Positions 17,985 through 44,869 of a DNA stretch of 64,000 nt are shown one piece after another (positions within the stretch are counted from its first letter, which is position 1; every line of letters begins with the position of its first letter). The stretch covers positions 31,620,001 to 31,684,000 of the forward strand of contig OZ116698.1 in NCBI GenBank assembly GCA_964199315.1. The letters run 5' to 3'. The position numbers were made by a program, and so were the translations under genes. Source of the DNA: Orbicella franksi (Eukaryota). Under the pieces are notes generated by a model. It worked only from the letters and a program-made list of their open reading frames with translations, was not told the origin of the DNA and ran no database searches.

Positions 17985-20260
17985 TTAACTACTGTCATAA
18001 CCTGGTCTAAAGCACAGGTACGCATAAGCTGGATGGTAGGGTGCATATCGTATCACAGGAACAGGCGTGTACGAGGGGTAGAATATACGACTTCTGTTGC
18101 TCGAGTCATCGGATTCTACCGCTCTGTCTTGGTCACTGTTTGTGTCCTCCATCTTTTGGTTTGTTCTTTTTCCTTTTGATCGACGATTGGAAAACCAGAC
18201 CTGAGAAAAACGACAATAAGTATTTGTCAGAACTGTATCTGTATCAGTCTGCTGTGGTTCCCATACAACCGGCTTATACATGGGGTCTTGGTAGCGAGCA
18301 AAACCTTCTTTTTAGAGTTCCTCTCATTAACACACGGTATAAATTATTTCAATCTACGGGGGAGAGTTGGACAATCAGTGTAACCCATTCTCTGAGGTTC
18401 AATTAACGAGATACCCTGTTGATATGGAGTTTCGGAAGTTTTTTTGTCGGAAATCGATCAGACTAACTTGCATGCCGATGGGCGGACATATACGGTACAT
18501 TTTGTTTTTGAAATGAGAAAACAATTATCTTTCTGAAGTCTGGAAAAATAACCTTTTAGTCTGTGGATTTGATCCTGATGTTTTATAAAAAGAAACACTC
18601 GTGTCGAGGTGAATTCACGTGCTAAGCACATGTTTTACAAGTTTAATCGTGATTCTACCTCGTAAGTCTATAGATGAAATGAAGCTCCTGGGTAATACTT
18701 TATGTCCTGAGCTAGCCCGCAGCTGTTAGGACCGGGTCACGAGAAAGGTTTGCAGACGAAACTCACCTGAATTCTCGATTCACTGATGTCCAATCTTTCT
18801 CCAAGTTCCTCGCGAGTCAGCACATCCGGGTATTGTGTTTTCTCGAAGGCTTTCTCCAGTTCTCGAATTTGATGTGGAGTGAACTTTGTTCGATTTCGTC
18901 TTCTGTAGTGTCTCAGCTTTTGCATCCCACTTGTAATGGAGGCAATGTCGCTGGCACTTACTGCAGCTGGTGACGAGGAAGTCGATTCTGCAAACGATCA
19001 ACAGAACATTGTAACAAACATAAATACAGCATGAGCCGGGTCCCTGGATAACCAGGTGACTCCCAATAAAACAACGTAACTCCTAAAGATAAGTTTAGTA
19101 TAGAGAGCAGCGACTGTTGCTCAGTTATGACAGCAATTCAGTTCATTTTAAAATCTGAATAGCGAAAAGCTTCTGTGGTTTCAACACTCTGCCATAAGAC
19201 AAGAGAGTGATTACAGACCGTCCTCTTTGGCATCTAGGTCATCCTTAAATTCACTTTATGGGTTTGAGCGACTTATTAATCCCTTCAGGTTTAAGTTTTC
19301 TTGCACTGTGACACCGATATAATAGTTTGAAGTAGTCTTTCGTATCACATTTCCGTCGCCAGGCAAGGTGCTCAACAACCTTATGTTTTCATTTAAAGAT
19401 CCTGTCTTACCCGGCTCTTCTTGAGAGGAAGATGACGTGGAAGGACTCAAGCTGACAGTTCTTGTCTCCTCGTTGATACTGAGGATATTAGCAATGGAGA
19501 ATGATCTTCTCTTGGGTCTAGGCTTGGGTTTTCCAGCATCCCCACTGTTTGTGCTCGAAGTATCACCCTCACTCTCTGCGTCACTGTTTTCTCCCTCAGA
19601 CTTTTCCATATAGTCACTTCCAGTTGACTTGACCCTTCTTAGCATCCTGCTGATGACAGTTAAGGGTGGCAGACTTTCCTTAGTGCAATAACCGTCAGCC
19701 ATTAGCTTTTCTTTGACTTCCCAGGAGAAGATTCCTGGCGTTGCGCGGCGATACTCCTCAATTTTGTTCTTCACTTCCGAGCTCACATCTCTCGATGTCT
19801 TCCTCTGCGCGCGGCCGGGTTCAAACGATCCAGTGTCGTTGTATTTGGAAAGCAGCTTACTGATGCAGCCATGTGAAACTTTCAGTTGCCGGCTGATATC
19901 ACATGGGCGGATTCCAAGTTCAGCCATTTCGATGATTCGTTGACGAACGGAGTTTGGAAGTGGTTTGCCATTTACAAAAACTCCACCTAGCTGGTTGAAC
20001 TTCCCGTGACCTACAATAGTTTAAAAAATAGTTTAGTTGCAGATACATCCATTGTACCGCAAGCCTGACTAATTTTCATTAACGAGTTGGCCACCGACAC
20101 TTCTTCGCAATAATAATTCCGATTAGATAGCCATAGGCGGCTGTGGCGCCATTATTACCTCATATCCTCAGTCTAACTTGGAAAATTAAACAGAGATATC
20201 CCGAAGAAAGCTTTATTTAGAAGGTATACCTGGGCAGTTATTCAAGCAGTCACTTCTCAT
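17985..20260 (-). CDS. PaxD: Pax gene A (Pax3/7 / PaxD-like): paired domain, octapeptide, S50 homeodomain, 355 aa. Exons 20260-20230, 20010-19411, 18987-18767, 18200-17985
   Basis: Spliced ORF: [11 protein letters not shown]|[18 protein letters not shown]...SHGCISKLL...[16 protein letters not shown]; octapeptide SFSIANIL; homeodomain RRRNRTKFT...[10 protein letters not shown]...IQ|VWFSNRR with the PRD-class intron between Q46 and V47. KIEEY and FSWE are Pax3/7-type. The symbol denotes the class only; paralogue number is not assigned. Confidence 0.92.
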
Positions 20261-22789
20261 TAGATTCGAAACCTCCTCTGGCTGCTAAAAAAACACACCG
20301 AGGAGAGTGTTTGTGGTTCTCCTGTCACGACATGAGGCACTGAATACACTGAAAGCTTTTTATTCCTGTCTGCCGGTGCAGAAATAAACTAAAGCAAACG
20401 AAAGACTCTTTAGATATAGTTGGCCCCTGAAGACGTTAAGGGCAACTTTGCCACAGCGTTTAAGGCAAACATCACAAATATGTCTTTGGTTGTTCCTGTT
20501 TTGTTTTGCTAATCATTATCATTATCTCCATCCGTTTTCACGTTATACCTTATGGAAGTTATAATTCGCAGCAACACTTTGTTACTCGCACTCTTGGTTA
20601 ATCGATTCCTGGTCACTGTTTTAGATCTGACTAACCAGTTTAGCGTGCTTCAAAGCAGCGATGAATTAGTTCTAGTCGGTAACAGATTTTTGGATGGCCG
20701 GTCTTCGATGCAAATCATTAGTTACTGACACAGCAAAACCTGATATAAATAAAATTTTTAAAACGTGCCTGCTGTAGAGTTGATATCCGTGAATTCCATT
20801 ATGCCTTTCCCTGGCTGCCAATTTTCAAATCCAGTTCCCAAAATCGTAGATAATGAAGCGTTATTATAGTTTTGCTGTCCGCTTAGCTTACCACGATACC
20901 GCGTTTTTCGAATTACTCAATGTGTGACTGAAGCTGGGTAAGTTATAAGATATAATGTGGGCGGGAGAACGTTTGACGTCATTGGTCATAACAAAGACAA
21001 GTGCTGCTTTCCTAGTACGTGATCGTGAATAAATCGTCTGTACGGGCTGTTTACATTTAGATTCTACTTCCGCTGTAAATTCGCAACTTTGTATGTTGTC
21101 CATTGAGAAAAATGGATCACAATAAGAGGATGACAATTGTTTATGTCTGTTTTTATCACAGTTAAGTGAAATTGGAGGGATGCAAAGCGAGGCTAGCAAG
21201 TCTTTCAGCTTCTACTTAAATGAACACAACTTAACCACGCTCTTGGACACGGAAATCGTTCATTTGGTACAAACGCAGAAAATAATTCTAGAAATCTATG
21301 CATTTTCCTGAAGAACACATGTAAGAAGCCTTAATTTATCGTGGGCGTTCTGTTCTCGCTTTGTTAACCGGTTAAAGCTAGACGTAAAATATGTCTATTT
21401 TATCTAGTTTTCCGCAAATGGAATTATACAGGACTATTTATAAATTTATTGCGAACTTACTCGACAATTAATGCACCTGTGTGGCTGTAATGATTAGTAT
21501 TTTAGTCGGAGGCAACTTTTAGACAACCAATCAGGTAAAAAAAATATTTGAAATTTAAAAAAGTTTCGCAGGCATTTCATTTGGGCAGGAAAGCTCTCCT
21601 GCCTTCTTTGTCCGTCAACGGAAATAAACGTGCCAACTGAACAAGATTATATTTTTGCCTAAGTTTTAAATAGCTGTCTGTTGTTCGTTTTAGCGTGCCT
21701 CAAGCGCGACCGCTCGAATGATTTTGTTTTGACGGCCACGTCAGTTGGTCTGGTGGCCCTTTGTGTTGTCTCTGTAATTGGATACCATTTGCTGTTCACG
21801 TGCGACTGATATAGCGTGACGTCTGACGGAACGCCCAAGGGCAATACAAACTTAGCGAGATAGCATGCATATTTTATCTGGGTGGGTGGGTTCTTAGGTC
21901 ACGCGAAACTTCCGGTGCGAAGAAAGAAATATTCAGCAGTCCTTTGCCGTTGTATTGCGAAACAACAAAGGCCAAAACAAATCAATACAACGAATCGCGC
22001 TTATTTTTCTTCCTTTCAAAGTGTGGAAATGAAAGCTTTGTTCAATCGCAAACACTAGATTACTATGTATATGGAGTGCCAAAAAACTTGTTGTCGGAGG
22101 AAAAATAATCGCGGAAAAAGAAAACAGTAACAATTTCTGTTAGTTTCGCGAAATAACCGATACCAACGAGAAAACAACTTCTAACTAAAAAATTATATTT
22201 TCCCAAAACGGAAGTCCTCACCACAGCATAGCGTTCAAAATAACAATAATAAAATAATAATGAAGACAGGAAGTTTAAGGAGCATATTTCGCAACACCGT
22301 TCACCACAGGTCTCGATGCCTACTGCCAAGCATGACTTCCTGTATAAAGATGGATATACGTAACGTCAGTTCAAGTTGATTTTGAACGCCCACGTATCTG
22401 TCCGGTTTCACGTGTAGAACAGCTAAAGTAATCTTAAATATATAGCCAACTCACGAAAAAATAAAATACTCCTGTAGAAGTGAAAAAGGCTGGTTTGAGG
22501 TAATTATTGGAATGCTTTATACGTAGGTGATGTCCGTTCTTTCGTTTTCAACAGCGACGGGAATGAGACAGGTGCACTCAGTATGTAAACATTAGAGACA
22601 GGAAGTTAATGGTAACTGAAGTGATTGCGAAACGCGCTGACAAGTTCACGGTCAAGCATAAGACCACTAAGATCGTAAAAATCTCTCTAAATATTGGCTC
22701 AGCACTGTCACGCCGCTAAACTGCGCGTGATCTACAAGCCTTATACCGGTGTGGTTTTATGTCTTGTCTGGGCTCCTGGTCTTGTTTTT

Positions 22790-22791
<2 letters not shown>

Positions 22792-22841
<50 letters not shown>

Positions 22842-22935
22842 TATTATTGTTGTTTTGTTTCGTTGTGTATGTGTGTGGGTTTTTTTATTTATTAATTCAT
22901 TAATTCATTTATTTATTTATTTATTTATTTATTTA
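22792..22935. repeat. (ATT)n microsatellite followed by (TTTA)n
   Basis: Directly visible at 22792-22850 and ~22905-22935; a G-run follows. Confidence 0.95.
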
Positions 22936-24348
22936 CTTTACTTTTTATTTTTTGGGGGGGTGGGGGGGGGGCCCTTGTGTGTGCGGGTTTTTTATTTTTG
23001 GGGGAGCTTACAACGCTAAATTATCCGATAATTTCAATTTTCATTAAATATATTGCTTGTCCCCCGCGTGTAGGTGTAGAACCCATTAGATCTTGTGTTA
23101 CATCAACAAAGGACTCTACATGCAAGTTCTGCTCACCCGAGCTCGTCACGGCACCTGTCGTATGAGCGACTTTGCACGGTTAAGGAACATACATTAAATG
23201 ATTACATTATCTTGCTTAGTTCTAATGGGGTTTAAAACCAATAACTCTTTTTTGGTTCCAGCTTTTTGAACGTGAAACATAAATTGGATCCGGTTCCTTG
23301 CTATCTAGTTAAAATTCACCGTATTTTATTTTTAAGGTTCCGCTGTTTGCGTCTGTATTAATCAAACAGAAATTCAGAAGAGTGTTCATTATGAGCTGTA
23401 TCAGACTCCGGGTTGTCAAATATCCCTCGTCCACAGTCGAGATCTTGTCACAGGGCGGATCTAAAAAGCTGAAAAGTTTTCTCAAGAAAAGTTTTGCTCA
23501 CTAATCACCGTTAGTCAGTCCTGGCTATAAAACTTCTCTTCTCGACCGATTTTATCACATGACGATGTTATCAGATGTTCTTTGTAACTCGTAAACCAAT
23601 GTGCGCGCGTGTACTGAAATGGTAAGCTCCATCACGACTCCAAATCGTTTCTTTTTACACCAAGTCAGTGAAAATTACAATACATACAGTGGAGTTGGAC
23701 TGATCCGGCATCCAGTCAATATTTTTAACATTCAACAGTTTAAGAATGGTTATGTGAAACTTTGATATTAGTACTTTCCTGAGAAAAACTCATAAATGAT
23801 GAAAAAGCTGATTCTTAACTGTTTTCATTTACACGGATTATCTATTAAGTTTCCTTTTCTTTTTTTCTTTCTCTTTTGTGATGTTTCATGGTCCCGGTTT
23901 GTTGTACTGATGGGAACTCATGATGGGCCGTAACTTACCAAACTATGTGCCAGATGTCACGTACGTTATTTATCATTATCAAGTTAATTAAGTTTTAAAT
24001 GAACTCTCGTTGCGGGAGAAACTATTCTGCCTTTCGGTACATTGGGTCATATTGTCCACATTCTTGCTTTTCTTACAGCAGAACAATATTGAAAGCAGCT
24101 TTGTTACCATCAATATCATAATTAGTAACTCACGTTTCACTGAGTTTGTTTCATATTTAATTTATTCAAGCTCAATAACATCTTGTGTGCGACGACGAAC
24201 ATATTGGGCCGCATTCTCTTCTGTAAGTGAGTCCCTTAAACTTTGTTTGAACAGTTTTTTGATCTTTTTTGTTTGCCAACCTCCAAAACATTGAGTTCTA
24301 GGAGTTCCTCCACGTTCACCTTTTAGAAACCAAATACATATATACTGA

Positions 24349-26515
24349 CAGTCCGGGATCGTTATCAGATTTGATAACCATGTGACGTCACAACATGGCG
24401 GCCATTTCAAACACCGGGAATTTTCGTATTCACTTCGCTTTGCTCGTTATTTTTTCGATTATACTCGGGTAATTTACCCATAATTCTATTCGATAATTAC
24501 CAGAAAAGAAGGAGCCTCATGTGTTTTGAAAATTGCGGTTGAAGACCAGCGTAAACGATGTAAAATGCTACTCGTAAAGTGAAACAGCGCTTGCAATTTT
24601 GCATCCAAACCAGGTATGTTTTTCATTTTGTCATTAGATTTAAGTTACTTGGAGATTTTTGCGAAAATCACAAAAAATATGTCGTTAATCTTCACGCCAT
24701 ATTCTTGGGATTTAACGTGTTTGTAGTGTTGTGCACGATCTGTGAAAAAAGTGCGCGGGGGTATTTTGATTTGCGATGTGTTGTTCGTAACGGCGGCCAT
24801 ACTTACAGCTGTAATTGATGTGTTCCTAGGTATTGAGATGGCGGATGCTGGTACCCATATAATCAAAATAGCAACTAAGTAATGTAAGTAACTTACATAA
24901 ATCATCTAAGCCCCTTCAGAAAAAATTATAGCTCTTAGTGAGTCGCTCGATTCATGGTACGGCAGTCCAGGTGGTCGGGAAACCACTTGCGAATCTAACA
25001 TTAGTTGTTTATTTTCTTTTGAAGGGTTACCATGAGTTCAAAATCAAGAGGCCAGAAGGAACTCCTTTTCATGTCCTTCCTGAAAATTGGAAACAAAGAC
25101 CCGTTCGCACTTCGTTGTGTTTTGCCAGAAATTAGAGAAATACCCGAGACACTTCTAGACGTGCCACAGTCTGGTATCCAAGAGCGCTAAGCAAAATTAC
25201 ACTTTGAGAGAAGTTGCTGGAAGACAGATAGGCCCGGTGCAATACTTCTTAAACAGGGAACTAAAACACCTTTTGGACTGCCGGAAAATCGGCAATCACA
25301 TTAAAGGGTAAGTTGTCTATATTTTAGAGTCAATTTCAACAACTCGCGGTCCTGAAATATTTTCCGGAAATGCCGGCCAAACTAGGTCAGTTTTCTGGCA
25401 CACCAGTCGTTATATAATGAAGCTTATTGTTGGATTTAGCGAGTGATCTATGATACAAAAACATATTACGTGAATTATAGTTTCTTTTATATGAATCGGT
25501 CATTAAAAGCTTTTTTCCATATCACCGAATGCACAACAATAGACTACTGATCTACAACTAAAACAATTTTTTTCCGGAAATGCCAAGACTTCCAAGTTGA
25601 CTGTCACATCTCACGACATTAAGTGCTGGAGGTGTATCACAAATTAAAGTAAACATACCTACTATATTTTTGTTGTTGTGCCAGAACCATATCAGGCGAG
25701 CCCACAACGAAGATGGAAACGAAATGTACAGCACAGCGGAGGGGATTGAATTAGCAATCGCAGAAATGGAATTAGGCGAGGGATGGGATATGGCCATCGA
25801 GGTAAGCTATTCTATCTTCAGTATATCTGGACAGAGATTCGACAGAGGGAGGGTCGCGAACTGTTTCGATACTTTTATTTCCATTTCATAGTAATGAATC
25901 ATAGTAGGAGATGTTTCGGTCCTAACCACGCTTCGCTCATGCAAATTGAACGAAATTCAGTTACAGCTCTCCGCTTGGAATATAGAGGCAACTTGTTCAG
26001 TGTCAATTTGTGAACTCAAGATGTATTTACTGTTAGTGTTTCGTTTATATTTTATACAGACTGTTGAACAGCCAGCTTCACCAACTAGCAAGAAAATGAA
26101 GACTGAGTGAAAATAGAAGCTATCATATTAGTATCAATAAATAACGCTTTTGTGAACAGAATAACTGTTGTCTACCTTTGTGTGTTTTTACTCGGAACAA
26201 ATATTATACGGTGTCGATCTGAAAATAAAACTTTTCGCGGTAGCTTTTGGACAAAGACAGTTTTCTTCAATACATCTCTGTTTCTATTCCATAATCCAGT
26301 AACCTATTGTGAAGCAAACATACAATTAACTAAATGAAATTGCATTGTGATGTTGTCAAAAAAGTAACTCCTTTCATCGCAGCGCCCCGTCGACCGCCAT
26401 ATTGAATTATACACTGTTGCTACCAAATAATGTCACGTGAACGAAAACTTGTGCAGCGATTGGTTAATGGTTTGTTTTGGTCGAGGTTATCAAATCTGAT
26501 AACGATCCCGGACTG
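24349..26515. mobile_element. 2167-bp TIR DNA element with perfect 31-bp TIRs and 5-bp TSD, containing exon-like remnants
   Basis: cagtccgggatcgttatcagatttgataacc (24349-24379) is the exact reverse complement of 26485-26515. ACTGA flanks both ends (24344-24348, 26516-26520). Confidence 0.85.
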
Positions 26516-27607
26516 ACTGAGTTAATGAAATGCATTCCAAAGTGTTCAAAGTCTGAAAGTGCACAGTCCCAGCCTCAGGAATTTCTCATTTTTAACTGTG
26601 GCTCTTTAGAGCGTCTTTAGAACTCTCAGGTGTTTTCTGTGGCTTCACACTCTATCTAGCCTTCGAAGCAAACGTTCTCGTACGTTTAGCCGCACCAATA
26701 ATCGTCAGGATTGATTCAGTGTTTTAAAAGAGAAAGGATTTTTTTTTTAGACGCCAGTAAGTGTTCGGTGTAATCATATCAAGTAAATCACTTGTCATTA
26801 AGGATATAATAGCCCTAATCAGTGTCAATAACGCTGCGGTTCAAGTAGTTCCAAGAATACCGTTTGGGTCAGAACTCATTAGTCGCCTTTTTCTCCGTCA
26901 GACATACAAGCGGACCATTTTGTAACCTTTCCTTATTTAAGTAGTACCTAGTTCTAGCTTTTCGATCCAAGGGCGTTATGTCCCAGATTCAGTTGGAAAG
27001 TTTAGCCTTAATTTATTGTTACACTTATTGCTTTAGGTGATATCTTTCATTGATATCACCGGAGAGTCAAACGGTGCCTGTTCATTTATCATAAATGAGA
27101 AGTACGTTTACACGAAGAAAGTCCTAGCTTCTGAAGTGTGTGGCTCCTGCATTGATTGTTCAATCAGTGTTAAACCTCATGCTAGAGTTACGCAATGACA
27201 GAGTACAGGATACAAAAGGGTGAAGATCTTTTTTTATTATTATTTTTCGCTATATGCACATGGTGAGTGATCAAGTGATATAGAAAACCGTTGATAGAAA
27301 ATTACCTTAATAATGATATGGTATTAATAAACATGTCAGACGGTACATGTCAACAATACACGTCAAACATCTAGAATTTTACGACTCAGTGAATTCGTCT
27401 TGAACTTGATAAGGCAAAAAGTCTGAAAAACGGATTAAAACGAATAGAATACAGAGTTTGAAAACTCCATCGTTTTCATGTAAGATGGCAGAACTGTACA
27501 ATTACGGTATGTTAGTCATTGCTCAGCAAAAGTTAAATTGTAGCAAAACTGAGTCAATGTTTCTTTGCCCATGGTGGCCGGTGGCTATTGAAATTCGTTT
27601 CCAGTTA

Positions 27608-29311
27608 TTATAGTGTCATCATCTGAATAGGTCTGAAGTGCATGTAGGGAAAAACACGAGCAGCTGGGTATGGAGCGTAGCGTATGACAGGTACCACTGG
27701 ATATGAAGGGTAGAAGATACGAGTCTTAGTTGATTCAGGACTGTTGTCTTCGTCAGCTTCTGGTTTGTGGAATTTCCTGCTTTTCGATTTGGAACGGTGG
27801 TTTGAAAACCAGACCTATAGAAAGAAAAATAGGGAGCTTATTAGTTCTTGTTTCTTGGCAGTATATGTGCGATGTCTTTCCATAAACTGTAATTGTCTTA
27901 AACGTCACTATATGATTGTGAGATGATTGCATTTGTGAACATTTCCCGTACATTGCTTTGAAAAAAAAAATGCCCAACCATGCTTACCTGAATCTTGGAT
28001 TCGCTGATATGAAGTCGCTCTGCAAGTTCTTCTCGTGTTAGAGCATCAGGATATTGCGTTTTCTCAAAGGCTTTCTCTAGTTCTTCGACTTGTTCAACTG
28101 TAAACTTGGTTCTGTTCCTTCGCTGATACAATCTTACATTATGGCGGCTGCTGTTGTTGATGCTGCTGCTGTTGTTGCAATTGATGACTGCTGGGCTTGG
28201 CAAGTCTCTTAGTACCGCAGAATGGCTAACAGTAGATCCTGGTGAATGAAACACAAAATAATTTTGTAAATTAATGTACCACCAAAATGTGAAATTTTAT
28301 TGAGTAATTTTCTATTTGATTAGCTTTGGGTACAGCCGGAGTACAAGAATTGAACATCCATCCATCTGTGCAAACTGCTCTGAGTCTATGATATTTCTGA
28401 CCTAGAGCCGAAAAATAAAACATAGTGTGAGCTGCTTACCTAGGTCAATGACTTTGCTTGGAGTCAATTCACTGGTATCCATCTTTTCCTTATCAGCCCT
28501 TTCCTCTTTTGTTTCCCATTTATCTTCAGCTTTGAGGATGTTGTCGATAGAGAAAGGAGTAAAACCTTTGTGTGGTGCATTCTCTTTAGAACTGTCCATC
28601 CCCACTTCACTGGCACTAACCGATGATCTTTCATATTCACTGCCGGTTGATCTCGCTCGTCGCAGTAACCTGCTAATTACAGTTAAGGGTGGCAGACTTT
28701 CCTTAGTGCAATAACCGTCAGCCACAAGCTTTTCTTTGACTTCCCAGGAGAAGATATCTGGTGTTGTGTGGCTGTACTCCTCAATTTTGTTCTTCACTTC
28801 CGAGCTCACATCTCTCGATGTCTTTCTCTTGGCGCGGCCGGGTTCAAACGAACCAGTGTCGTTGTATTTGGAAAGCAGCTTACTAATGCAGCCATGTGAA
28901 ACTTTCAGTTGCCGACTGATATCACATGGACGGATTCCAAGTTCAGCCATTTCGATGATTCGTTGACGAACGGAGTTTGGAAGCGGTTTCCCATTTACGA
29001 ACACTCCACCTAACTGGTTTAGCTTGCCTAAGGAAGGAAAAAACAAACATTGTTCAATGGTTAAACTACGCTATCGGCTAGGTGTGATATACTAGGAAAT
29101 AAAGACATAAATGTTTGTTTTGATCGCCTCATATATTTGTTCTTTCTTAACCATACTTAAGTGGCTCATGTCTGCAATTGTACCGTCGCATGAGCAACTG
29201 AATTGTGTCGTGACATTCTTAAAACGGAATCAAGCTAAACCCTGTTCCGCATAGCTTATGAGAAACTTAAATATTTGCGCCATATCCACCTGATTTAAAA
29301 ACTTCCTCCAT
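27608..29311 (-). CDS. PaxD: Pax gene B (Pax3/7 / PaxD-like): paired domain, octapeptide, S50 homeodomain, ~355 aa. Exons 29311-29290 (tentative), 29027-28440, 28238-27988, 27814-27608
   Basis: [17 protein letters not shown]...FSWEVKEKL; octapeptide PFSIDNIL; homeodomain QRRNRTKFT...IQ|VWFSNHR; stop TAA 27610-27608. Exon 1 (MEEVFKSG|) uses a weaker GTGGAT donor and has an in-frame stop just upstream of the ATG, so it is less certain. Confidence 0.88.
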
Positions 29312-32094: not shown

Positions 32095-35000
32095 ATGCAA
32101 GATTCTTCCACATTTTCACATGCAGGTAATAACATCTTCCGTTACTTTTAAAAATCGTTTAGGAGACGCCTTTAGTACAATGTTAAGTTTAAATTATTAG
32201 AAAAGACCCGCGATAACATAGTGTAATTCTCAGCTCAACAAGCAAACTCTGATCGAATAATTCCCGGCAATTAACACAGAGAAAGCAGAGATACTAACGA
32301 ATTAAATCGTAATAAAGCATATCCAAATCTTTCCCAGAGCTCGTGCTACCATCAACCTCCGTAATTGAAATGTTTTCAAATTTATGATCCGTTCCGTGGG
32401 ATCGATTGATTCGGTGTCCAAGCCGTTAAACAGTCGGTCAAAACATGACACGTGCACACCCAATTTCAATGAGATCCAAAGACTTGGAAACTCATAGTGG
32501 CTCCCTGTCAACATACGAAAAGCAATTTTCAGTTTAGCAATAGATGGTTCATTCCTTATCCGTCACCAATATTCCCTGCTATATCTGTCAGTAATAAATC
32601 CCGTGAGGTTAAATCCAGCTTCGTTTAGACTCCGCAGTCTCCTGCAGCTCTTACCTATGTTCAGTTAGCAGTTTTCAACGTCGTTCCAGTTGTATAAAGT
32701 CCAGAGTTATTTTGCATACAAACTTAAGTGATGTTGATCAGATTTCGATACAGTATCTCACTAGTATGATTGTCTCACTGTGATTACATCGCCAGTGAAC
32801 ACCCTTTCTTTGCCAGGTGTTTTGATGTCCACGAAGTAACAATATATCTTCGCATGCCGAAACTAAGGTAGTAGAAATTCGCAACAGACTATCGCATTAG
32901 ATCGCATGGCAGTTTAATTATTTTAGACAGTATTAAAACATATTTACATAACTGGAGTTGGTGGATCAGTTATATTCTACCTACAGCATATTGGTGTGCA
33001 GTTATTAAGGGCCCAAGTTTCAATCTTCATTCTGTTGTAGGCGGTTTTCTGGTTCTAAATCAAAAGAGTCCATGTTGTGACTAACTAAAGCTGTTTAAGC
33101 AGACCTTCAATTTTAAAATTGTGCACTCTTTTATTGCTTCCGTTGTCAAGTGTCGAGTGTCGAGCAAGTGAACTTGAATAAATCAGTAACTGATGCTTGC
33201 CCCGCATGTTCACCGCAAACAACTCAATTTTCCTTTGGCAAACAAACACCCACTACAAAAACGTGATTTCCTTCCGTAGGACCAGGGCGTTTAAATCAGC
33301 TTGGAGGTGCTTATATCAATGGCAAACCACTTCCAAAAGAGATTCGGAACGAAATCCTCGCGTTAGCCCTCCAAGGATTTCGTCCTTGTGACATAAGTCG
33401 TCGTTTACGGATTACCCATGGCTGTATTAGTAAGTTACTGTCCAAGTATCGTGAAACTGGCTCAATCCAAGCTGGAGGAGAAAGTGCAGGCCGACCCCGA
33501 GTGATCACTCCTCGAATAGCACAGAGAATCATGGAGTACAGAAAGGAACAACCAGGTCTGTTTTCTTGGGAGATACGAGATCGTCTTGTTCAAGAAAACC
33601 TGTGCAGTAAGGAAAGTCCTCCCTCTCTCAGTTCCATCAGTAGATTGTTGAAGAATAAACATAATTTGGACACAGCGCAAGGAATTATCCGGAAACGTAA
33701 CAGCAATTCCTACATGATTGCCAGTATCTTAAATCTACCGTCTAGCCAGTCGTCATCGTCGATTCCTCCATCGATGTCGTCTACTTCTATAGATAGTCGT
33801 GGAAAAATGGTTGAACAGAAACAGACAGGTCAGTAAAAAAGAAACTATTTTACGTGTTTTCCCTTTTCAATTGCTTGCAAAACCATTTTTATATCCTACG
33901 TGTTGTTTACTCTAGTGGTTCTATGTGCCCTAGTGCACGTAGGAGATTCCTCCAGCCCTGGTCCTCCTCAACAACAATATGACAACTTCCGAACGTCGCT
34001 TCCATGCCCGATAGTCAAGATAGTGACATTTCACGGAACGGGTCAAGCGAATTTGTTGGTAATCTTAAAATGTTAAAAGAAAGCATAGTCACAAGACTAG
34101 AATCAGGTGGGCCTGACTCCGGCAAGTCATCAAAATTTACTTAGGCCTTTCAGTCAAGAACTTGTATATAAAATGGCTAACCAAAATTGATGTAAGTCAA
34201 TCAAGGCTCTGTGGAAGTAGCGCACATGGGGTGCCAACAGCTAACGGAAATCAGCTCTATGAAATATTTATTTAATAGTCAATATTTTGAGTATTCTGTG
34301 AGTTTTATTCTGAAAAATGTCGAAAAGTAGAGTTTCTACAACCTTGCGGACATTCCAGTTTACTTGCCCAGTATTTGTGAATAATGTTAGAAATGACTGA
34401 CAATATTAGCGTCTATTTAACTCCTATCTAATCAGAAACAACTGGAAAATGCTTTCAGTTAGGTTTACCCTCGATTTTTCTTAATACGTTGACTCAACTG
34501 ATACTTGTTAAGCAATAGCGATTGACAATGTTTACTATCTGGCGATCATAACCTGGACATTCTAACTATTACTAAACGTGGATGGCATTGAATGACTTGG
34601 AAAGTTAATGATAGGTGGCTAGATGATTTAAACTTTACGGGGTTACGTACCAACAAAAAAATAATTTGGCTGACTTATTTATTTAGTTATTTTATTTAAT
34701 TTCTAAATTAAACACCACGATAAAGGAAAGTCATTTAAACACGTGCACATAAAGCATTCAAAACATAGTAATGATATAAAAGTAATAGTTTAAACATTTT
34801 TTTTAACCTTTATGTATATTATATGACTAAGAATACAAAGCAATCCTTCTTTAAGAGGCCAAATTAACTGTTTGTCTGTTGTGTTGAGCTACTGAAAACA
34901 GTCCAGTGGACACTGAAGAAAACCCTCACATTGATATATTTCACATTTCTATCTGACTTACTTTTGAGAGGCAGTGTTTGAGCATAGTTGTACTCAATTT

Positions 35001-35645
35001 CAATCTTAGGGGTATTATAATACTGTGAAATAAAGGAGTGAAAATAACTTTTTCCCATCCACTCAGTTGTCAGAGTAATATAAATATTTCCACTCTACCA
35101 AGGCCTAAACTGTCATCTGTGAAATGAGATGATAAAGGTCGGACCTGAAAACACACTTAGTTGCTTTTCTGGTTTGAAAGAAACCCTTAATAACTTGTGC
35201 ATGATCTATAAAATTGTTAATGTGTTTCTGTGCCAAGATTTCCTGAAAACAGATTTACTATTTCATAATCATTCCTGTTTTTTTCAAATACAAAATCTAT
35301 ATGAAAACAAAATATCCTCACAACGACGTTTGAAGCTCATTTGACGAATAACGTGGATCCTCCAATTTGCGACACCTTAAATCTTCTGTTAGAAAATATT
35401 TTTTGTCCAAAAACTCTTAGCTTAGTTTTTAGTGGTGCATATCTAGATTTAGATTTTTTAAATTTTTAACTTTTATCATATCTTTAAATTTTTATTTTAT
35501 TTTGTAATTTTTATTATCTTATAAGTGTAAATAGTTTTTAATTTTTAACTTAGGATACAGGGCCACTGGTTCGTCAGTCTTTTTACTGTTATGTGTTACC
35601 CTCTGTAAATAAAGTTGTTACTTACTTACTTACTTACTTACTTAC

Positions 35646-35701
<56 letters not shown>

Positions 35702-37991
35702 ATTAAGAAGACAAAAAACATTTAACCCAGAAAAATACTTTCTTATCTCTGTGGAAGGGACGCTGTCTTAAGGGATTCTCTACTACTTCTAGTTTCACAT
35801 GACACAATGAGGTTAGAGTATTTGTAGCTGAATTTATTTTTGGCAATATCCAGCCAGATATGTCTTACCTTTGGAAAACAAACATTTCTGAAGCCCAAGG
35901 TTGATTTCCGTTGCAAAGATTACAACTGCAGAAATTGTTTTATGTAAGTTATATGCAAGTTAAGCTTACCTAGCATTAGAGCTAATTGTGCCAAGACCTG
36001 GTTTTACGTTTTGATTTGTGTACCATGAGTTAGACACTGATCTTTCTCAAGCCATTGAGGATTCCAGGTACAAATAACTTCCTTCTGAAAAGAGAAGGGG
36101 TCTTACTATAACGATCTTTTTAAAGTTATCTTGTTGAAAGTAATTTTAGCATTTATATAAAAAGTTATCGTAATTATATTGTGACGGATCTCGAAAAGCC
36201 CCACAAGTGAACATTAAAAAAGTATGTAATTCTTGTAACACACTATCACGACTACAAAGGACTACTGACACTGACACTTGTACCATTACCCAGTCGGATT
36301 TTGCTCATATAGACGCTAATTAGAGTAACTCGCTCTAATTTTATGGTTGAAGAAAAAAGAAACAAAGTTGTCAGGAAATCTGAGGAGGATTGAGGACAGA
36401 AGGATTTGTAGATTGTTATTAAAAAGGGTATAATAGGAACTAGGATTGGACTTCATAGCTTGTTGTTTGGGTCTAAATTGCCCCTTAGCCTAACCTCCAA
36501 GGCTGTGGGACCAATGGGTTTTCTATAATCAAGTGTTCCTTTATCGTGCTGGTCAGAGAGTGCCTGGCTGTAGGGAATGGTGGGTAGACTATAGAAGTTG
36601 GTGGCAGACCAGGGAGTGTAAGTCCAGCAATAAAATGTTTTGACATTGTGGAAATAGGATTTTGAAGCATTTTGAATGGCTACTTAGAATTGAGCTAAGG
36701 ATTTGGATTTGCATTCTTCCCTTTTCTCTTTAGGACTCAGCATCTAAAAATACAACAAACAGCATCTAAAAATATCGCAGTCTCTCTGTTGACGTCAATT
36801 GTCTACCACATTGTCTGCCACTTGTAACTGTGAGTTTGTAGTGTTTGGTCATTAATAATAAACATTTATTTTGTTGGCCGTCACAGAGAATACCCAGGAT
36901 GCTGAAGACTCACGCGAAACTTTTCCGCTGCGGATTCAGAGAAGAGAACGCATCAAGTACACGAGCCACCAACTACATGAACTTGAAACAGCATTTAAAA
37001 TCAATCAGTACCCATCTGTGTCAGGGAGAGAACAACTAGCAAGAAAAATTGGAGTTACTGAGTCCAGAATTCAGGTGCAGTGCTATTCAGGTGTTATTCA
37101 ACTGCATTACTGTTTAGTTCAGGTAACTTAAACTGACTAATGTTTGAGCTCTAAAGTAAATAGGAGAATCTACCAACTACCATTTAGTTTCCTCTGATGG
37201 GTAAGTAACAATACATTTGTTTTACTTTTAACAATAGATTTTAAGCAACAACCTGTAAACTGTAACAAATAAATGGAAGGCTTCTCAGTCCTTCCAACTT
37301 CACAGGCTACAAATTCAGGCGCTGTTGGGTTATGACATTGAATTTGACAAGTTCTAGTTATCTACCGAACACTCTTGGTTGGCACAAAAAGGAATTGTTA
37401 TCTATATAAAACATAAGCCAGCCTGAGTGTATTTTTCCAACATGTTTACTCCAAGAATAATACTACTGACCTTCCGAACATTTGTCACAAATTATCTTAA
37501 AGGCCAAGAACGGCTTTTCTCAAGCGTAGCCTTTGCCACAGCGCTGCCTCCCCCAGGAACACAATCTAGCTAGAGACCTAAAACTAGCTAATCCCCGTGG
37601 CCCACCTGCAAAAGAGGATTAACGAGAAGTTCGCTGAACCAGACTCCTCCACGACAATAAAAAAAACTGTGTACCCCATCGAACCAACAAAAATAGGCTT
37701 TCTAATGAACAAAGTTACTCCAGAGTTTGTTATTAACGTTTCATGGTAGATTTTACGATATTTAAAACCAAATTCTTCAGATCTTCTAATCACCTGTTTG
37801 GTGGACTCTAGGTGTGGTTCTCAAATCGAAGGGCAAAGTGCAAAGCTAGAAGGCACTCGACTAATGAAGCAGATTCAAGAACAAACGACCCAAAAGACTG
37901 CTCGTGTCGACGGATTTCAGACTCTCACGTACTACCGAAAATGATGGGACCTGGTACATCAAGAATATTCTTTCCACCTGAACAACATTAA
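32095..37991 (+). CDS. PaxD: Pax gene C (divergent PaxD-like): paired domain, octapeptide, S50 homeodomain, 315 aa. Exons 32095-32125, 33280-33828, 36887-37074, 37812-37991
   Basis: MQDSSTFSHAG|[18 protein letters not shown]...THGCISKLL...PGLFSWEIRDRL; octapeptide SYMIASIL; homeodomain QRRERIKYT...YPSVSGREQL...IQ|VWFSNRRAK; phases 1,1,0 as in A and B; stop TAA 37989-37991. The symbol denotes the class only. Confidence 0.85.
35200..35701 (+). mobile_element. 3' end of a LINE (L2/CR1-like) terminating in a (TTAC)n tail
   Basis: aataaagtt is immediately followed by ~21 copies of TTAC (35618-35701, one interruption). The upstream fragment MIYKIVN resembles an RT C-terminus. Confidence 0.55.
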
Positions 37992-40900
37992 GCTGTTTGT
38001 TGCACGAAATGTGCCTAATGGTAATACTTACTCTTAAATATTTAGACTGGTTTTCTAGATTGGCCCATGAAATCTACACTAGTCTCTTCCCAGAGAACTA
38101 GCTTTATGTTTGAATTTGTTCTATTCACACCTCGAGTGAGCTTTCTAAGAAATAAATTTCCTAACCTACAAAGATGCCTCTCTTCTTGCCCTGTACGTTT
38201 TAAATGTTTAAATGATTCATGGCTAGCATTGGATATGAAATGACACATAACCCAGAGAGGTTAAAGTTATGTAAACATATTACAGACATATTAGAGTGAT
38301 ATATGTTATAGTGACTGAGGAGAGCTCTTTCTTTCTCTTTTTGCTGCTTGGTCCGGTGCAAGAGCTCAAAACAAGTAAATTTGCATGAGGAATTTTTCAA
38401 ATGCTCCTTACAATAATGGAACCTAATTTCGAAGTGATTTAACAAACTTTTTCCCTGCAGGAATTATAGCTTCATTTGAAATGGAACTTTAAAACTTGAT
38501 TTCAGATAAAAAAAAAAGGTTGACTGAGAAATAAATAAATAATTAAATTAATTAACTGATTTAGAGCTAATGAAAGCCAATAGTAGAACACAAATCTGAC
38601 GATATTACGTGAATTGCTGAAGAGATCGACAGCTAGTTAAGAGTAGTTTTAGGCGACGTTTTGAAGACACATGTCATTATTATACCTAGAACTTGATGTA
38701 TCCGTGGCAACTGTATTATGACAATTTAAAATTTTCTTACAGTAACAAGATTTAGCTTTCAAGTAGTCATCTTTACATAATTTATAACATTTTTGCTTTA
38801 TTTAGTTTTGCGTCATTGCTTTAGTGGATTTTTCTGGTATTAGAAAAATCAAGAAATCGTAGATGGCAGAACGAAGATGGCGCCTGTTGGAATATCATGA
38901 ACGAAATGACTACGTGAAGTGACATCACCGTCTCCTGTTACTTACCTCAAATGAAACATGTTTGGATGTTCTACTTACCCTCTTAGTTTCATTTCTTTGT
39001 TTAAATGTTCTTGAAGTTACAGAGGAGGTTGGGCGGCTTCCGTAGAAAACAAAAACAAGACGGTCAGAATAGCGTTAACATATGTCAGTAGTGGATGATG
39101 CTAAATTTTAGGGAAAGGGACTAAAACTGATAAAAAATTTACAAATTAGTGACGAAAAATAGAAAAAAAAAAAAAAAACAAACAAAAAGCAGGAAAGAAA
39201 CAACAAGCAAACTTGAAACCAGTTTTGTGGTTTTTCTTGAACTTTATACAAAAATGTAAACATTAAAATTCTAGAGTATAAATAAACTTCACAAAGCAAA
39301 CGTTTTGAGCTACATAATAAATTAAAAGGGACCACAAAAATCCTGTTTTGATTTGTTCAGGTGTGTGACATAATTTGAGCCTGCATGCTTATTGGACCTC
39401 ATTAGACAATTTTCGAGATCTGACTGTGACCACATGAGGGGTCCATGTGAGTAGCCTGAGACGTGCAGCATTTTCAGCAATGCTTAGACATGCAGTGACT
39501 GTGGCTTGGATGGTTTAATATGGATGATCATCCTACACTTCCCGTTGTCGGTAAGAACTGTGAACTAGTTTGCAACCAATACTTTAGCTGGCTGGGACAA
39601 TTTTTGGTTCTCTCGGTTCTTTAAAATTACATGGCATGCAAGTGAATGGATATTTGTATTTACAAGTGCAGTATCAGCAACTGATTGCTCAAACAGTTCT
39701 TAGTTTCCATGCAGTTTTCGACTGGCCGTAAAATAAATAATCGATCTGAACGTTCCCGATGCCATAGGTCCTGGAAAACCAAATACTCTTTTGAAATTTA
39801 CCACGACAAAAATACCAGTTGATTTGCGTGTGCAACTAGGCTAGTCCGATTTCTGACTTGCAGCAGCGCGAGGAACACTTTAATTTGTATCTCGATACGA
39901 TTGGCACTGACAAAAATTGTCTGTCTGCTTCAAATCAGACAAACACAGTGACTGAACACGAGTTTTGAGTTCCGTTTTCCTACGTGTAAAAGCGTGGGCA
40001 AGTTCACCCCGGAGTTCACCCTGTGATGTCCAGGGGTAAATGAACAAATCACGTTCGTATTTCCTACGATGATCCAGCATACTGCACCCTTTTCATAAAA
40101 TCGCATATTCTGAAGTTGTGATGGCCTTCTTTAGGTTCACACCGCTTAAATCAGCTTGGAGGTGCTTATGTCAACGGCAAACCACTTCCAAAAGAGATTC
40201 GGAACGAAATCCTCGCGTTAGCCCTCCAAGGAATTCTTCCTTGTGGCATAAGTCGTCGTTTACGGATCATGCACTCATGGCTGTATTAGTAAGTTGCTGT
40301 CCAAGTATCGTAAAACTGGCTCAATCCAAGCTGGTAGAGAAAGTGAAGGCCGACCCCGATCACTCCTCGAATAGCACAGAGAATCATGGAGTACAGAAAG
40401 GAACAACCAGGTCTGTTTTCTTGGAAGATACGAGATCGTCTTGTTCAAGAAAGCCCGTGCAGTAAGGAAAGTCCTCCCTCTCTTAGTTCCATCAGTAGAT
40501 TGTTGAAGAATAAAGATGAATTGGAAATAGCGCCGGAATTATCCGGGAACGTAACTACAATTTCTACATGATCGCCAGTATCTTAAACCTACCGCCATTT
40601 GAGAGTCGGTCTTCCTCGTCGATTCCATCATCTATGGCATCTACATCCACAGATAGCCATGGACAAATATCTGAACAGAAACAGACAGGTCAGTAATAAT
40701 ATCAAATTTACTTGATAAAGTGATCCAGAGATTTCTGTTTCAGTTTATCTTAGATCCTTGTGGGGTTATTGAAAACCGTTCAATGGACACGAAACTAACC
40801 TTTACCTTGAAGTTCGCTTCCATTTTCTTTTGAGAGGCAATGCTCGAATTGTAATCAATTTCAATTTTTTGTTGTGAAAAAGTGGAATATAAAGGTCTGA

Positions 40901-41595
40901 ATATTTTTTTGGAAGCAATGTTTTCACTGTCTACGTGAAAGAAAAAGAGTAGACGTTAAGCGTAAAATCGTTAGAGCACACTGTTGCTTTTCTAGTTTAT
41001 AAAAAAAACCTTAATAACCTGTACATCATGTATAAAACTGAATGAGTTAATAGCAGTCTGAAACCAATAGTCTAACAAAGACCGGTTAGTCCTTAAAATT
41101 TGCCATAGTGGCCCTATGATCTTTACATCAGTTGTAATGTTAAAAGATAATGTCTAATTTATAGTTTAAATGTGTCAGAGGAAACTCGTTTTGTTCAATA
41201 AAACAAGAAATTGCCGTTGAAAGAAAACAAAATACATTTACATACACTTTCAAAATGTTTATGTATAAGAGTTCTGCAAACTGATTAACTCTTTGGAAGA
41301 CAGGTTTAATGTTTGTTCACTCCATTAGTATAGTTAAGTGGAATTTGAAATTTTATATACACCAATCAATTCCATAACCTTCATTGATATTAATTTACAG
41401 AATTGATTTAAGGTCAGGAAAATTATGAAGTGTTTGACGATTTTTTAAAGCACTTTCTAATACAAATGGAAGATGTTGCAGCATATCACTGTAAGGTACC
41501 TCAGGGAAGTCTTCTTAAGAGATCTTTCACTGTTTTTAATGTTACATGGTATAGATAATGTATTTTTAGCTGAAATTATTTCAGAAATTCAATCC
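35743..41595 (+). repeat. Tandem segmental duplication, copy 1 (C homeodomain exons, intergenic DNA, D paired exon)
   Basis: Colinear with 41630-~48477, from ttatctctgtggaaggg to gctgaaattatttc..aaattcaat. Shared exons, UTR, MITEs and LINE fragment are visible by eye. Confidence 0.88.
35901..36700 (-). mobile_element. L1/Tx1-like LINE ORF2 fragment in intron 2 of C
   Basis: Paralogous to 42684-44130; degenerate minus-strand coding (ORF 36485-36670). Confidence 0.65.
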
Positions 41596-44500
41596 AGGTC
41601 CAAATAGGTCCAAAGAGGTCCAAAGATTGTTATCTCTGTGGAAGGGAAACTGTCTTAAGGAATTCTCTACTACAGGACACAGTGAGGTTAGAGTATTCGT
41701 AACTGAATTTATTTTTGGCAATATCCAGCCAGATATGTCTTACCTTTGGGAAACAAACATTTCTGAAGCCCAAGGTTGATTTCTTGTTTTTTTTCTTTTT
41801 TTTATTACAATATCTTACATTACATTACATACAAAATTACCTACTACTTACAATGTCCACGTAACTTACAATTTAACGATAATAACAAAACTTACAATAC
41901 TAACATTATTTACGATTTGTTAATATCTTACATTACAATAATATCTTACATTACAATTTGTTAATATCTTTCATGTAAAGGGTTAGCTACAATACGGGGC
42001 TTTCTCGCATATTAATTTGTGACTTAGATTTATGTTTCTCAATTTTAATTTTGTTTGTGAACATCGCTAAGAAAGCATCGAAATAAAATTCTTCTTCTTT
42101 TCTTGAGGCAGTATATAAATAATATTTGGCTATAATAATGCAGAGGTTTAAGCCAAGATGATGAGCGAAGTTATCTGTCACGCCATATATTATTTCATTT
42201 TTATCGAGAGTGATCCTATCCCCGTTTTTGGAGCTCCACCAATTAGTAAAGAGAGACCAAAAATGCTGAGCTTCAGAGCAGGTAACAAAAAGATGGGTTA
42301 ACGTTTGTCTTTCTCCACAGAGGTGACATTTATCCTGTTCCTTGATTGAATCTCTAAAAAGTGTCGAATTTGTGGGTAGAATGTGATGAATTATTTTGTA
42401 TTGGAAAATAGCGAGTCTAGTGTCTTTTGTAACATTAAACGGAAGGCTATAAATGAGTTGTATTGTATGTTCTTTTAGACTGGCTTCTTTCATCCTTCGT
42501 TCAGCTGTAGGCGTAACGAATTTACTCTTAACAAAGAATTTAGTTGCTGATCTGCAAGAGAGTTTATCTTATCCTTCTTATCCTTCTCAGAACGTTCTTC
42601 CAAGGGTTCAGTAACATTTCCTTTGAGAATATTGATCCATTTTTGAGGGACTGCGTGGCATAGACCGAAATAGTATAAGAAGTTTGATTTCTGTTGCAAA
42701 GATTGCAACTGCAGAAATTGTTTTATGTTAATTATATGCAAATTTAGCTTACCTAGCATTAGAGCTAATTATGCCAAGACCTGGTTTTACGTCTTGATTT
42801 GCGTACCATGAGTTAGACACTGATCTTTCTCAAGCTATTGAGGATTCCAGGCACAAATAACTTCCTTCTGAAAAGAGAAGGGGTCTTACTATAAGGACCT
42901 TTTCAAAGTTATCTTGTTTAAAGTAATTTTTAGCATTTATATAAAAATTTATTGTAATTTTATTGTTACGGATCTCGAAAAGCCCCACAAGTGAACAGTA
43001 AAAAAGTATGTAACCCACTATTACGACTACAAAGGACAACTGACACTGACACTTGTATCATTACCCAGTCGGATTTTGCTCATATAGACGTTAATTAGAG
43101 TAACTTGCTCTAATTTTATGGTTGAAGAAAAAAGAAACAAAGTTGTCAGGAAATCTAAGGAGGATTGAGGGCAGAAGGATTTGTAGATTGTCATTAAAAA
43201 GGGTATAATAGGAGCTAGGATTGGACTTCATAGTTTGTTGTTTGGGTCTAAATTGCCCCTTAGCCTAAACTTTTTCTTTAAATTTATATTTGAATATACA
43301 CATTATTTAGAAGACAAACATTACTTACAATAGTAACAATACGTACAGCACTAATTTAACTTACACTACTAACACTACATAATATAGTAATAGTAACATT
43401 GCTTACAATACTAAACAGCACTTGCAATACTAACATTGCAATTACACTACAGTACGTAATACTAAGGAGAGCAGGGAAATAGAACAAACCATTTTAATAA
43501 AACCAGCTTATTCCACAAAGTGCAAAAACAGGCTTCGAATTTGCGTGGCATGATGCATTATTATTTACTATTATGCTAATGGTAAGAAAGAAAGGGGAGT
43601 TGCTTATACTAATACGAGAATAAAGGAATCCAACTTTTTGTAATGTACAAGTTTACCATTTCTTTTGGAAATCAAAAATTCTATGTTAAGAGTTGCTTTC
43701 AATTTAGCCTTAAAAACTTCTAAAGATGGTTTTGTATTATCGAGCTTACACCTATAGATATAAAACTTTGCAAGCAAAAGAATGTGGTTAATTACTATTA
43801 AGTCTTTATCAATATCAAATTTACAAAACAAAACATCTATGAGTGAAAAATCTACTACTTCATTTTATGGATGGCCAGCCATGATAACACCTCTTTCCAA
43901 AACGATTGGACTTCATAGCTTGTTGTTTGAGTCTAAATTGTCCCTTAGCCCTACCTCGAAGGCTGTGAGACCAATTCGTTTTCTATAATGAAAGTGTTCC
44001 TTTATCTTGCTGGGCAGAGAGTGCCTGGCTGTAGAGAATGGTGGGTAGACTATAGAAGTTGGTGGGCAGACCAGGGAGTGTAAGTCCAGCAATAAAATGT
44101 TTTGACATTGTGGAAATAGGGTTTTGAATAGCATTTGGACTGGTTACTTAGAATTGAGCTAGGATTTGGATTTGCATTCTTCCCTTTTCCCTTTAGGACT
44201 CAGCATCTAAAAATACAACAAACAGCATCTAAAAATATCGCAGTCTCTCTGTTGACGTCAATTGTCTACCACATTGTCTATCACGTGTAAGCGGCGAGTT
44301 TGTAGTGCTTGGTCATTAGTAATAAGCATTCTTTTTGTTGGCCATCACCGAGAATACACAGGATGCTGAAGACTCACGCGAAACTTTTCCGCTGCGGATT
44401 CAGAGAAGAGAACGCATCAAGTACACGAGCCACCAACTGCATGAACTTGAAACAGCATTTAAAATCAATCAGTACCCATCTGTGTCAGGGAGAGAACATC

Positions 44501-44869
44501 TAGCGAGAAAAAGTGGAGTTACTGCGGAGTCAAGAATTCAGGTGCATTGCTATTCAGGGTACAACGAAAAAAGGCTTTCTAATGAACAAAGTTAATCCAG
44601 GGCTTATTATTAACGTTTCATGGTAGTTTTTACGATATTCTGTAACCAAATTCTTCAGATCTTCTAATCATCTGTTTGTTGGACTCTAGGTGTGGTTCTC
44701 AAATTGAAGAGCGAAGTGCAAAGCTAGAAGGCACTCGACTAATGAAAGACCAAGACCAAGACCAAACCACCCAAAAGACTGCACGCGTCGTCGGATTTCA
44801 GACTCTCACGTACTACCGAAAATGATGGGACCTGGTACCTCAAGAATATTCTTTCCACCTGATCAATAA
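40026..44869 (+). pseudogene. Pax pseudogene D, a chimera of an E-type 5' half and a C-type 3' half. Exons 40026-40035 (tentative), 40135-40688, 44351-44541, 44690-44869
   Basis: Lesions: +4 insertion at ~40269-40272 giving TAG at 40287-40289; -4 deletion at ~40359; -1 deletion at ~40534; intron-2 acceptor CAG>CCG at 44348-44350; 3-nt insertion in the homeobox (VTAESRIQ); nonsense CGA>TGA at 44705-44707 (R52*). Confidence 0.92.

Follow-up and report, generated by a model that had tools for sequence, protein, structure and literature searches.

Introduction

Gene conversion among tandem homeobox paralogues is well known, for example from the mammalian PRD-class ETCHbox genes (PMC8208926) and from the eve and Dlx pairs of Capitella (mentioned in PMC3359188). 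For the amphioxus genes Pax3/7a and Pax3/7b conversion has been suggested but not tested (Barton-Owen, Ferrier & Somorjai 2018, PMC6010424). Within the Cnidaria, multiple PaxD copies have been treated as specific to Nematostella vectensis (PMC5584322), and no report of conversion among cnidarian PaxD genes was found in the literature searched. The present analysis deals with two paired-box and homeobox genes, termed A and B, of the coral Orbicella franksi. They are located in a stretch of 64,000 nucleotides (nt) of contig OZ116698.1 (assembly GCA_964199315.1, positions 31,620,001 to 31,684,000 of the forward strand), which is called the window in the following; coordinates without a locus name refer to it.

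The amphioxus pair is the closest described system. Like Pax3/7a and Pax3/7b, which are tandem Pax3/7-class duplicates lying about 10 kb apart in the same orientation (PMC6010424), A and B are tandem genes of the same orientation with a distance of about 9 kb. In both systems the DNA-binding domains are strongly conserved at the nucleotide level and the linkers and termini have diverged. In the corals, recurrent and independent interlocus gene conversion between A and B, bounded to about 350–400 nt, is strongly supported. It is very probable, taken together with this explanation, that A and B go back to an old tandem duplication of a Pax3/7-like gene, probably of the scleractinian PaxD type.

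Divergence of A and B in the window

A tblastn search with a paired-domain query revealed five paired boxes (A to E) in the 64-kb window. Those of A (19996-19658) and B (29019-28681) are both encoded on the minus strand. The direct comparison of 19658-19996 with 28681-29019 gives exactly 21 differences in 339 nt (93.8% identity), in agreement with the about 21 counted by hand in the preliminary description. Each stretch encodes 113 in-frame paired-domain residues, six of which differ. A self-BLASTN of the window found only two alignable stretches between the genes, namely 19610-20005 versus 28633-29028 (396 nt, 90.2%) and, in the first homeobox exon, 18762-18863 versus 27983-28084 (102 nt, 77.5%). 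The introns, the linkers and the last exons cannot be aligned, as had been claimed.

The proportion of synonymous differences (pS) and the synonymous and non-synonymous divergence (dS, dN) were derived from Nei-Gojobori counts. The 113 codons of the paired box show a pS of 0.188, a dS of 0.216 and a dN of 0.025, and the other three regions counted are saturated: pS is 0.91 in the homeobox, 0.81 in a C-terminal motif and 0.86 in the octapeptide. The expectation that the homeoboxes differ at most synonymous sites is thereby confirmed, and sliding identity together with dS likewise set the paired box apart from the rest. Where A and B share an amino acid, the same codon is used in 95 of 116 cases in the paired box versus 29 of 67 elsewhere (Fisher p = 1.8e-7). 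Paired box and unalignable linker form a single exon, exon 2, inside which the identity falls from about position 19657 and is gone by about 19610. The earlier statement that the rest is saturated is therefore right, but the boundary does not follow the exons: the similar tract stops within exon 2, a few codons short of the end of the domain.

Paired boxes group by species and homeoboxes by locus

Syntenic loci were fetched from eight other coral assemblies (L001, L002, L004, L005, L009, L010, L011 and L012); L003 was left out as a duplicate of L002. Six of them (L001, L002, L004, L005, L010 and L011) are HiFi metagenome-derived coral contigs, and L009 belongs to the chromosome-level assembly of Pocillopora verrucosa (GCA_036669915.2, CM071750.1). 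The Acropora-like loci L010 and L011 were used in place of Acropora muricata. L012 contains only the B orthologue within the 10-kb flank, and the set of eight species with both genes consists of the window species and the remaining seven loci. The fast-evolving B exon, compared with named proteins, places the window species, L001 and L009 with Pocillopora and Oculina, and L002, L004, L010, L011 and L012 with Acropora; L005 stands furthest away. The recovered loci agree in the order, orientation and exon structure of A and B. A protein search with the A exon showed furthermore that the linkers of the coral contigs fall cleanly into an A-type and a B-type.

The pS between the paired boxes of A and B within a species ranges from 0.08 to 0.38 and is in every species lower than that to any paired box of another species (0.33–0.61). 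The homeoboxes behave in the opposite way, with a pS of 0.75–0.91 within species and of down to 0.39 between orthologues. Accordingly, a maximum likelihood tree of the 339-nt paired-box core places A and B as sisters within all eight species (support 86–100), whereas the homeobox tree (171 nt) separates the A copies of all species from the B copies as two clades (99/96). In approximately unbiased (AU) tests an A clade is rejected for the paired box (difference in log likelihood 313, p = 2.4e-5) and within-species pairing is rejected for the homeobox (p <= 5e-4). Each half of the paired box, taken separately, rejects locus clades, and a tree built only on third codon positions still pairs A with B in seven of the eight species, the window pair remaining without resolution. 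Among the 152 variable columns of the core, 80 differ between species with A equal to B within at least seven of the eight, and only two sort by locus.

In addition, the polymorphic sites were analysed with our own permutation version of a Sawyer-type (GENECONV-like) fragment test; in each of the eight species 0 of 10000 permutations reached the observed fragment. The checks proposed beforehand, sliding-window dS, the fragment test and the comparison of trees in related species, thus gave the outcome predicted for conversion. Taken together, dS, the permutation test and the trees strongly support the claim that A and B are homogenised in the paired box only while the rest diverges. The combination of species-wise paired boxes and locus-wise homeoboxes points to recurrent, independent conversion of about 350–400 nt between the two loci.

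One of the A orthologues deserves a separate remark. In L010 (15815-16196) one extra A at paired-box column 138 breaks the reading frame. The cause is a genuine inactivating mutation or else an error of the assembly in a homopolymer.

Anatomy of the converted tract

In seven species the stretch shared by A and B has its start no more than about 9 nt from the exon-2 acceptor and its end 350–397 nt further downstream, with an identity of 89–97%. The best-supported conversion fragments of the permutation test, given in paired-box columns, extend over columns 39-339 in the window (19958-19658 in A; 28681-28981 in B), 3-358 in L001, 36-323 in L009, 3-382 in L002, 3-372 in L004, 3-315 in L010, 3-365 in L011 and 12-255 in L005. 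In L005 the shared stretch also extends with small indels about 290 nt into the non-coding upstream intron, so that protein-level selection cannot account for the tract there. At the other end, codons 118-126, the last of the domain, are locus-specific including their synonymous positions in the Pocillopora-like (robust-coral) group and mostly homogenised in the Acropora-like group; the 3' limit of the tract is therefore specific to the lineage. The end points vary by lineage, and hence the tract is independent of coding constraint.

The sole place in the core that is sorted by locus is a small island in the linker between the PAI and RED subdomains. It comprises the third base of codon 63 and codon 64, which read GCx CAG in A (19805..19808, minus strand; Q) and GCC AAG in B (28828-28831, minus strand; K). 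Five of the eight species, drawn from both groups, have Q in A and K in B at codon 64. In L002 both copies have Q and in L004 both have K, which shows that transfer went in both directions. The island thus tends to escape conversion or to be restored. Since the synonymous neighbour in codon 63 is locus-specific as well, it appears to be a truly unconverted patch. It is probably kept apart by selection, which is the simplest account, and it makes codon 64 a candidate for a functional difference between the A and B proteins that is open to direct test.

The linker itself differs from that of other Pax proteins. In A and B it reads EPGR-A[QK]RKTSRD (19793-19831 in A), and other Pax proteins including the PaxD of anemones and octocorals possess a longer GGSKPR-type linker. 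The conversion-resistant codon 64 falls within this altered linker.

Timing and mechanism

The duplication of A and B is very likely older than the split between the lineage of the window coral, Pocillopora and Oculina and the Acropora-like lineage, a view held with the same confidence as, and jointly with, that of recurrent conversion. Between the window species and L001 pS is about 0.4 in paired box and homeobox alike, and between A and B of the same species it is 0.19 (window) and 0.09 (L001) in the paired box. As both values lie below the divergence of the two species, at least one conversion must have occurred in each lineage after their split. In the half of the box encoding the RED subdomain the A and B copies of the window are sisters (99/99).

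According to the explanation held here as very probable, about 350–400 nt at the start of exon 2, comprising most of the paired box, have been copied repeatedly between the paralogues. The process is a short-tract, presumably non-reciprocal interlocus gene conversion that acted independently in every sampled lineage and in both directions, and exon 1, the introns, the linker of the same exon, the homeobox and the C-terminus evolve locus by locus. Short, variable and bidirectional tracts between linked direct repeats argue for gene conversion and not for unequal crossing-over, which would homogenise whole units. Presumably, a break in one copy is repaired with the neighbouring copy as template. 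The paired box (about 390 nt) may be the only long contiguous stretch whose similarity protein constraint keeps high enough for a substrate; an intron divides the homeobox into pieces of 138 and 42 nt with about 70–77% identity. Once homogenised, the paired box would remain a good substrate, and conversion could sustain itself in this way.

Several points weigh against this reading or limit its reach. The half of the box encoding the PAI subdomain does not join the two window copies as sisters (78/67). The data of the window species by themselves could be explained by one conversion event, of about half the age of the split between this species and L001, and a dS of 0.2 implies that the last event in this genome was not very recent; recurrence over deep time is concluded because eight lineages show conversion, and not from the window genome alone. 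Six of the eight comparison assemblies are metagenome-derived and were placed by their sequence similarity to named proteins of Acropora, Pocillopora and Oculina. Signs of GC-biased conversion are not clear: when the mean GC content at third codon positions was compared between the tract and the homeobox of the same genes, the tract showed only a slight rise (0.52 versus 0.455), and a marked excess occurs only in L005 (0.62–0.69). That a self-perpetuating substrate sets the limits of the tract is something we infer. Finally, no reads of gene A were found in two polyA RNA runs with the same organism label, of each of which about 12% was read, and this is evidence neither way.

Alternative explanations

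The similarity of the paired boxes could also arise without any conversion. One possibility is a constraint at the nucleotide level that freezes the synonymous sites of both copies, for instance through an exonic enhancer, RNA structure or strong codon selection. Ultraconserved exons occur in developmental genes, and the low dS of the A–B comparison in the window would fit. However, the synonymous sites of the box are free to change between species (pS 0.33–0.80 versus 0.08–0.38 within), the 80 variable columns co-vary by species, and third positions alone still pair A with B in all species but the window coral, where the pair is without resolution. Such a constraint was rejected on the between-species synonymous divergence of the box and is very improbable. 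Just as improbable is an independent recent duplication in each coral lineage followed by very fast divergence outside the paired box. It would account for the species-wise paired boxes, but the A and B clades of the homeobox tree span all species with within-species pairing rejected, the linkers are of A-type or B-type across species, gene order, orientation and exon structure are conserved, and A-specific and B-specific protein motifs are each common to several species. This explanation was likewise discarded, on the homeobox tree, the linker types and synteny. A collapsed or chimeric assembly of one paired-box exon has in its favour only the general difficulty of assembling near-identical repeats, and it is the least credible of all. 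Each copy is set in flanks of its own, and 21 sites tell the two apart. Copy A recurs with 0–1 differences in contigs from independent samples, and their depth across it is not doubled. The same pattern is found in the other coral assemblies including the chromosome-level one (eight fetched, L012 with B only). In the whole 497-Mb assembly the only copies of the tract are A and B. Short-read unitigs break at the identical runs, and a shared unitig of 46 nt (19656-19701) has about twice the depth of its flanks in run X10, in keeping with two copies that really exist. The collapse that had been named as a possible objection is thus excluded by the two copies in the genome, the independent samples and the replication in other assemblies.

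A different question is whether selection favours the conversion. Both proteins may need the same DNA specificity of the paired domain, for example for shared targets or joint occupancy, with one residue protected. The tract coincides almost exactly with the paired domain in seven of the eight species, the proportion of non-synonymous differences (pN) within pairs is very low (0.008–0.06), and the island at codon 64 suggests that selection limits what conversion overwrites. However, the same limits follow from substrate homology alone, and the variable ends of the tract, short of the domain end in the robust-coral group and within the intron in L005, are those expected of a mechanical process. 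Selection for shared specificity is possible but rather unlikely. The suggestion of the preliminary description that conversion keeps the specificity of the paired domains shared is likewise possible, and a neutral self-perpetuating process explains the same pattern. One site of the tract, residue 64 (Q in A, K in B), is in fact kept different. Even more doubtful is the wider proposal that concerted evolution of the paired box is an adaptive, selected state across the scleractinian crown group, in which one shared paired-domain specificity is combined with two homeodomain and linker identities and Q64/K64 is the sole tolerated difference. If true, it would constitute a natural experiment in modular transcription-factor evolution, and it would also be a general warning that "lineage-specific" cnidarian PaxD expansions drawn from paired-domain trees are conversion artefacts.

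Structure of genes A and B

The exon models of both genes, all on the minus strand, were read from the sequence and the reading frame and checked against annotated Pocillopora and Acropora proteins; the junctions are inferred. Exon 1 of gene B (29290..29311) encodes MEEVFKS plus one base with the donor GTGGAT, and it corresponds to MSELFKSG in the annotated orthologue of Pocillopora verrucosa. For gene A, the first exon was not located in the sequence, where just two weak candidates exist. Exon 2 of gene A (19411..20010; acceptor tattgtag/GT, donor G/gtaag) comprises the paired domain, the linker and an octapeptide-like FSIANIL, and exon 2 of gene B (28440..29027; acceptor ccttag/GC, donor G/gtaag) comprises the paired domain, the linker and FSIDNIL. 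The paired-box core homogenised with B, 113 codons from NQLGG to PPLT, is located at 19658..19996 in A, and the core of B, 93.8% identical to it, at 28681..29019. The N-terminal paired domain is confirmed in both genes by the Pfam profile PAX (PF00292). The profile matches A with E = 8.7e-50 (profile positions 2-125 of 125) and B with E = 1e-47 (5-125). The octapeptide or eh1-like motif of the exon 2 linker, FSIANILS in A and FSIDNILK in B, was judged by eye and not by a profile.

The first homeobox exon of gene A (18767..18987) has an acceptor at 18987 or 18960, both of which are in frame, and ends with SRIQ before the donor gtgagt at homeodomain position 46/47. This exon has escaped homogenisation (77% identity to B, pS about 0.93). 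Its counterpart in gene B (27988..28238) ends at the same homeodomain position with SKIQ before gtaagc. The Pfam profile Homeodomain matches these exons with E = 1.6e-13 (A) and 6.5e-14 (B). The last exons (17985..18200 in A; 27608..27814 in B) contain, according to sequence and model, the remainder of the homeodomain, a conserved C-terminal motif and the stop codon. The spliced models of both genes thus contain a complete paired-type homeodomain with a serine at position 50 and an intron at 46/47. At homeodomain position 52 of B (27805-27797, minus strand) the usual R is replaced by H (VWFSNHRSK); this H is kept in the B orthologues of seven of eight other species, and L005 has a Q.

The stony corals Pocillopora, Oculina and Acropora provide the nearest named relatives of both genes. 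The nearest named matches are "Pax-3-B-like", Nematostella PaxD2 and Actinia Pax-7-like, and the tentative placement into the PaxD (Pax3/7-like) class rests on these matches. Outside the Scleractinia the nearest named relatives are Nematostella PaxD2, Actinia "Pax-7-like" and octocoral "Pax-3-like" proteins.

Between A and B a long trinucleotide microsatellite (about 22750-22900) is located, in which the open reading frames are runs of L, Y or I. A further gene with paired box and homeobox (L008) lies on the same chromosome at C1:33950223-33953312, about 2.3 Mb away. Its paired domain is about 67% identical to those of A and B over the first 60 residues, and it is the sole other weak DNA match to the tract.

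Genes C, D and E and neighbouring elements

The remaining three paired boxes are located on the plus strand at 33294-33632 (C), 40149-40487 (D) and 47047-47385 (E). They belong to Pax genes of a second type (33262-51353) that form a recent tandem triplication in units of about 6.9 kb, and these units align in non-coding DNA too. The paired box of D contains several in-frame stops and its middle looks frameshifted. It had been noted that the paired-box cores of C and E are more similar than their last exons, and this holds with 97.3% versus 82.6% identity. However, it is not specific to the paired box: homeobox exon 1, with a pS of 0.075, equals the paired box with 0.074, and only the last exon has a higher value (pS 0.27, pN 0.13), E being markedly more diverged there. 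C and E were therefore dismissed as a second case of paired-box-restricted conversion, in view of the equal pS in homeobox exon 1, in favour of a recent tandem duplication of whole units.

A C-type Pax gene is also present upstream of B in L009 (1127-6932, compared with 33294-38000 in the window), where it lies on the same strand as B. In the window, L010 and L011 it is divergently oriented, and the difference points to a local inversion in one lineage. In L012 (317-6700), upstream of the B orthologue, a 1435-amino-acid family-B DNA polymerase (DNA_pol_B_2) is located beside genes with DUF2738 and DUF5754; the region looks like a Polinton/Maverick-like or virus-derived insertion.

Significance and comparison with known systems

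The paired domain is the usual classifier of Pax genes, and in these corals it tracks the species and not the history of the genes. Trees of the paired domain would therefore wrongly infer recent lineage-specific duplications and misdate the A/B duplication, whose old age is evident from homeobox, linker and synteny. Where PaxD expansions have been described as specific to a cnidarian species, a second look based on the homeobox is advisable. Furthermore, the locus offers a clean case of sub-genic conversion replicated in eight independent lineages, in which one domain is homogenised and the other is free to diverge. It should be useful for the question of what limits conversion tracts, and of whether it is selection or mere substrate homology that maintains concerted evolution for very long periods.

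With the ETCHbox genes and the Capitella eve and Dlx pairs, A and B share the non-reciprocal homogenisation of linked paralogues, by which species-wise clustering mimics recent duplication. Those cases concern homeoboxes or whole genes and usually young duplicates, whereas the coral pair is old and its homeobox escapes. The converted part is here a second DNA-binding domain of the same protein, and one codon island resists.

The likeness to other cnidarian PaxD genes (Acropora Pax-D; Nematostella PaxD1-D4) lies in the combination of a paired domain, an octapeptide and a paired-type homeodomain with S50. In comparison to them, the paired domain of A and B is a divergent scleractinian form, with GKPLP and with EPGR-A[QK]RKTSRD instead of the GGSKPR-type linker.

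Conservation in amphioxus Pax3/7a and Pax3/7b extends to paired domain, octapeptide and homeodomain alike, whereas homogenisation in the corals is confined to the paired box and the homeobox remains clearly orthologous by locus. Moreover, conversion is shown in the corals by incongruent trees across eight species, with independent events in each lineage. Hence, A and B represent a new instance of a known process, in which the restriction to one of two DNA-binding domains, the replication across a deep coral split and the protected codon island are new as well.

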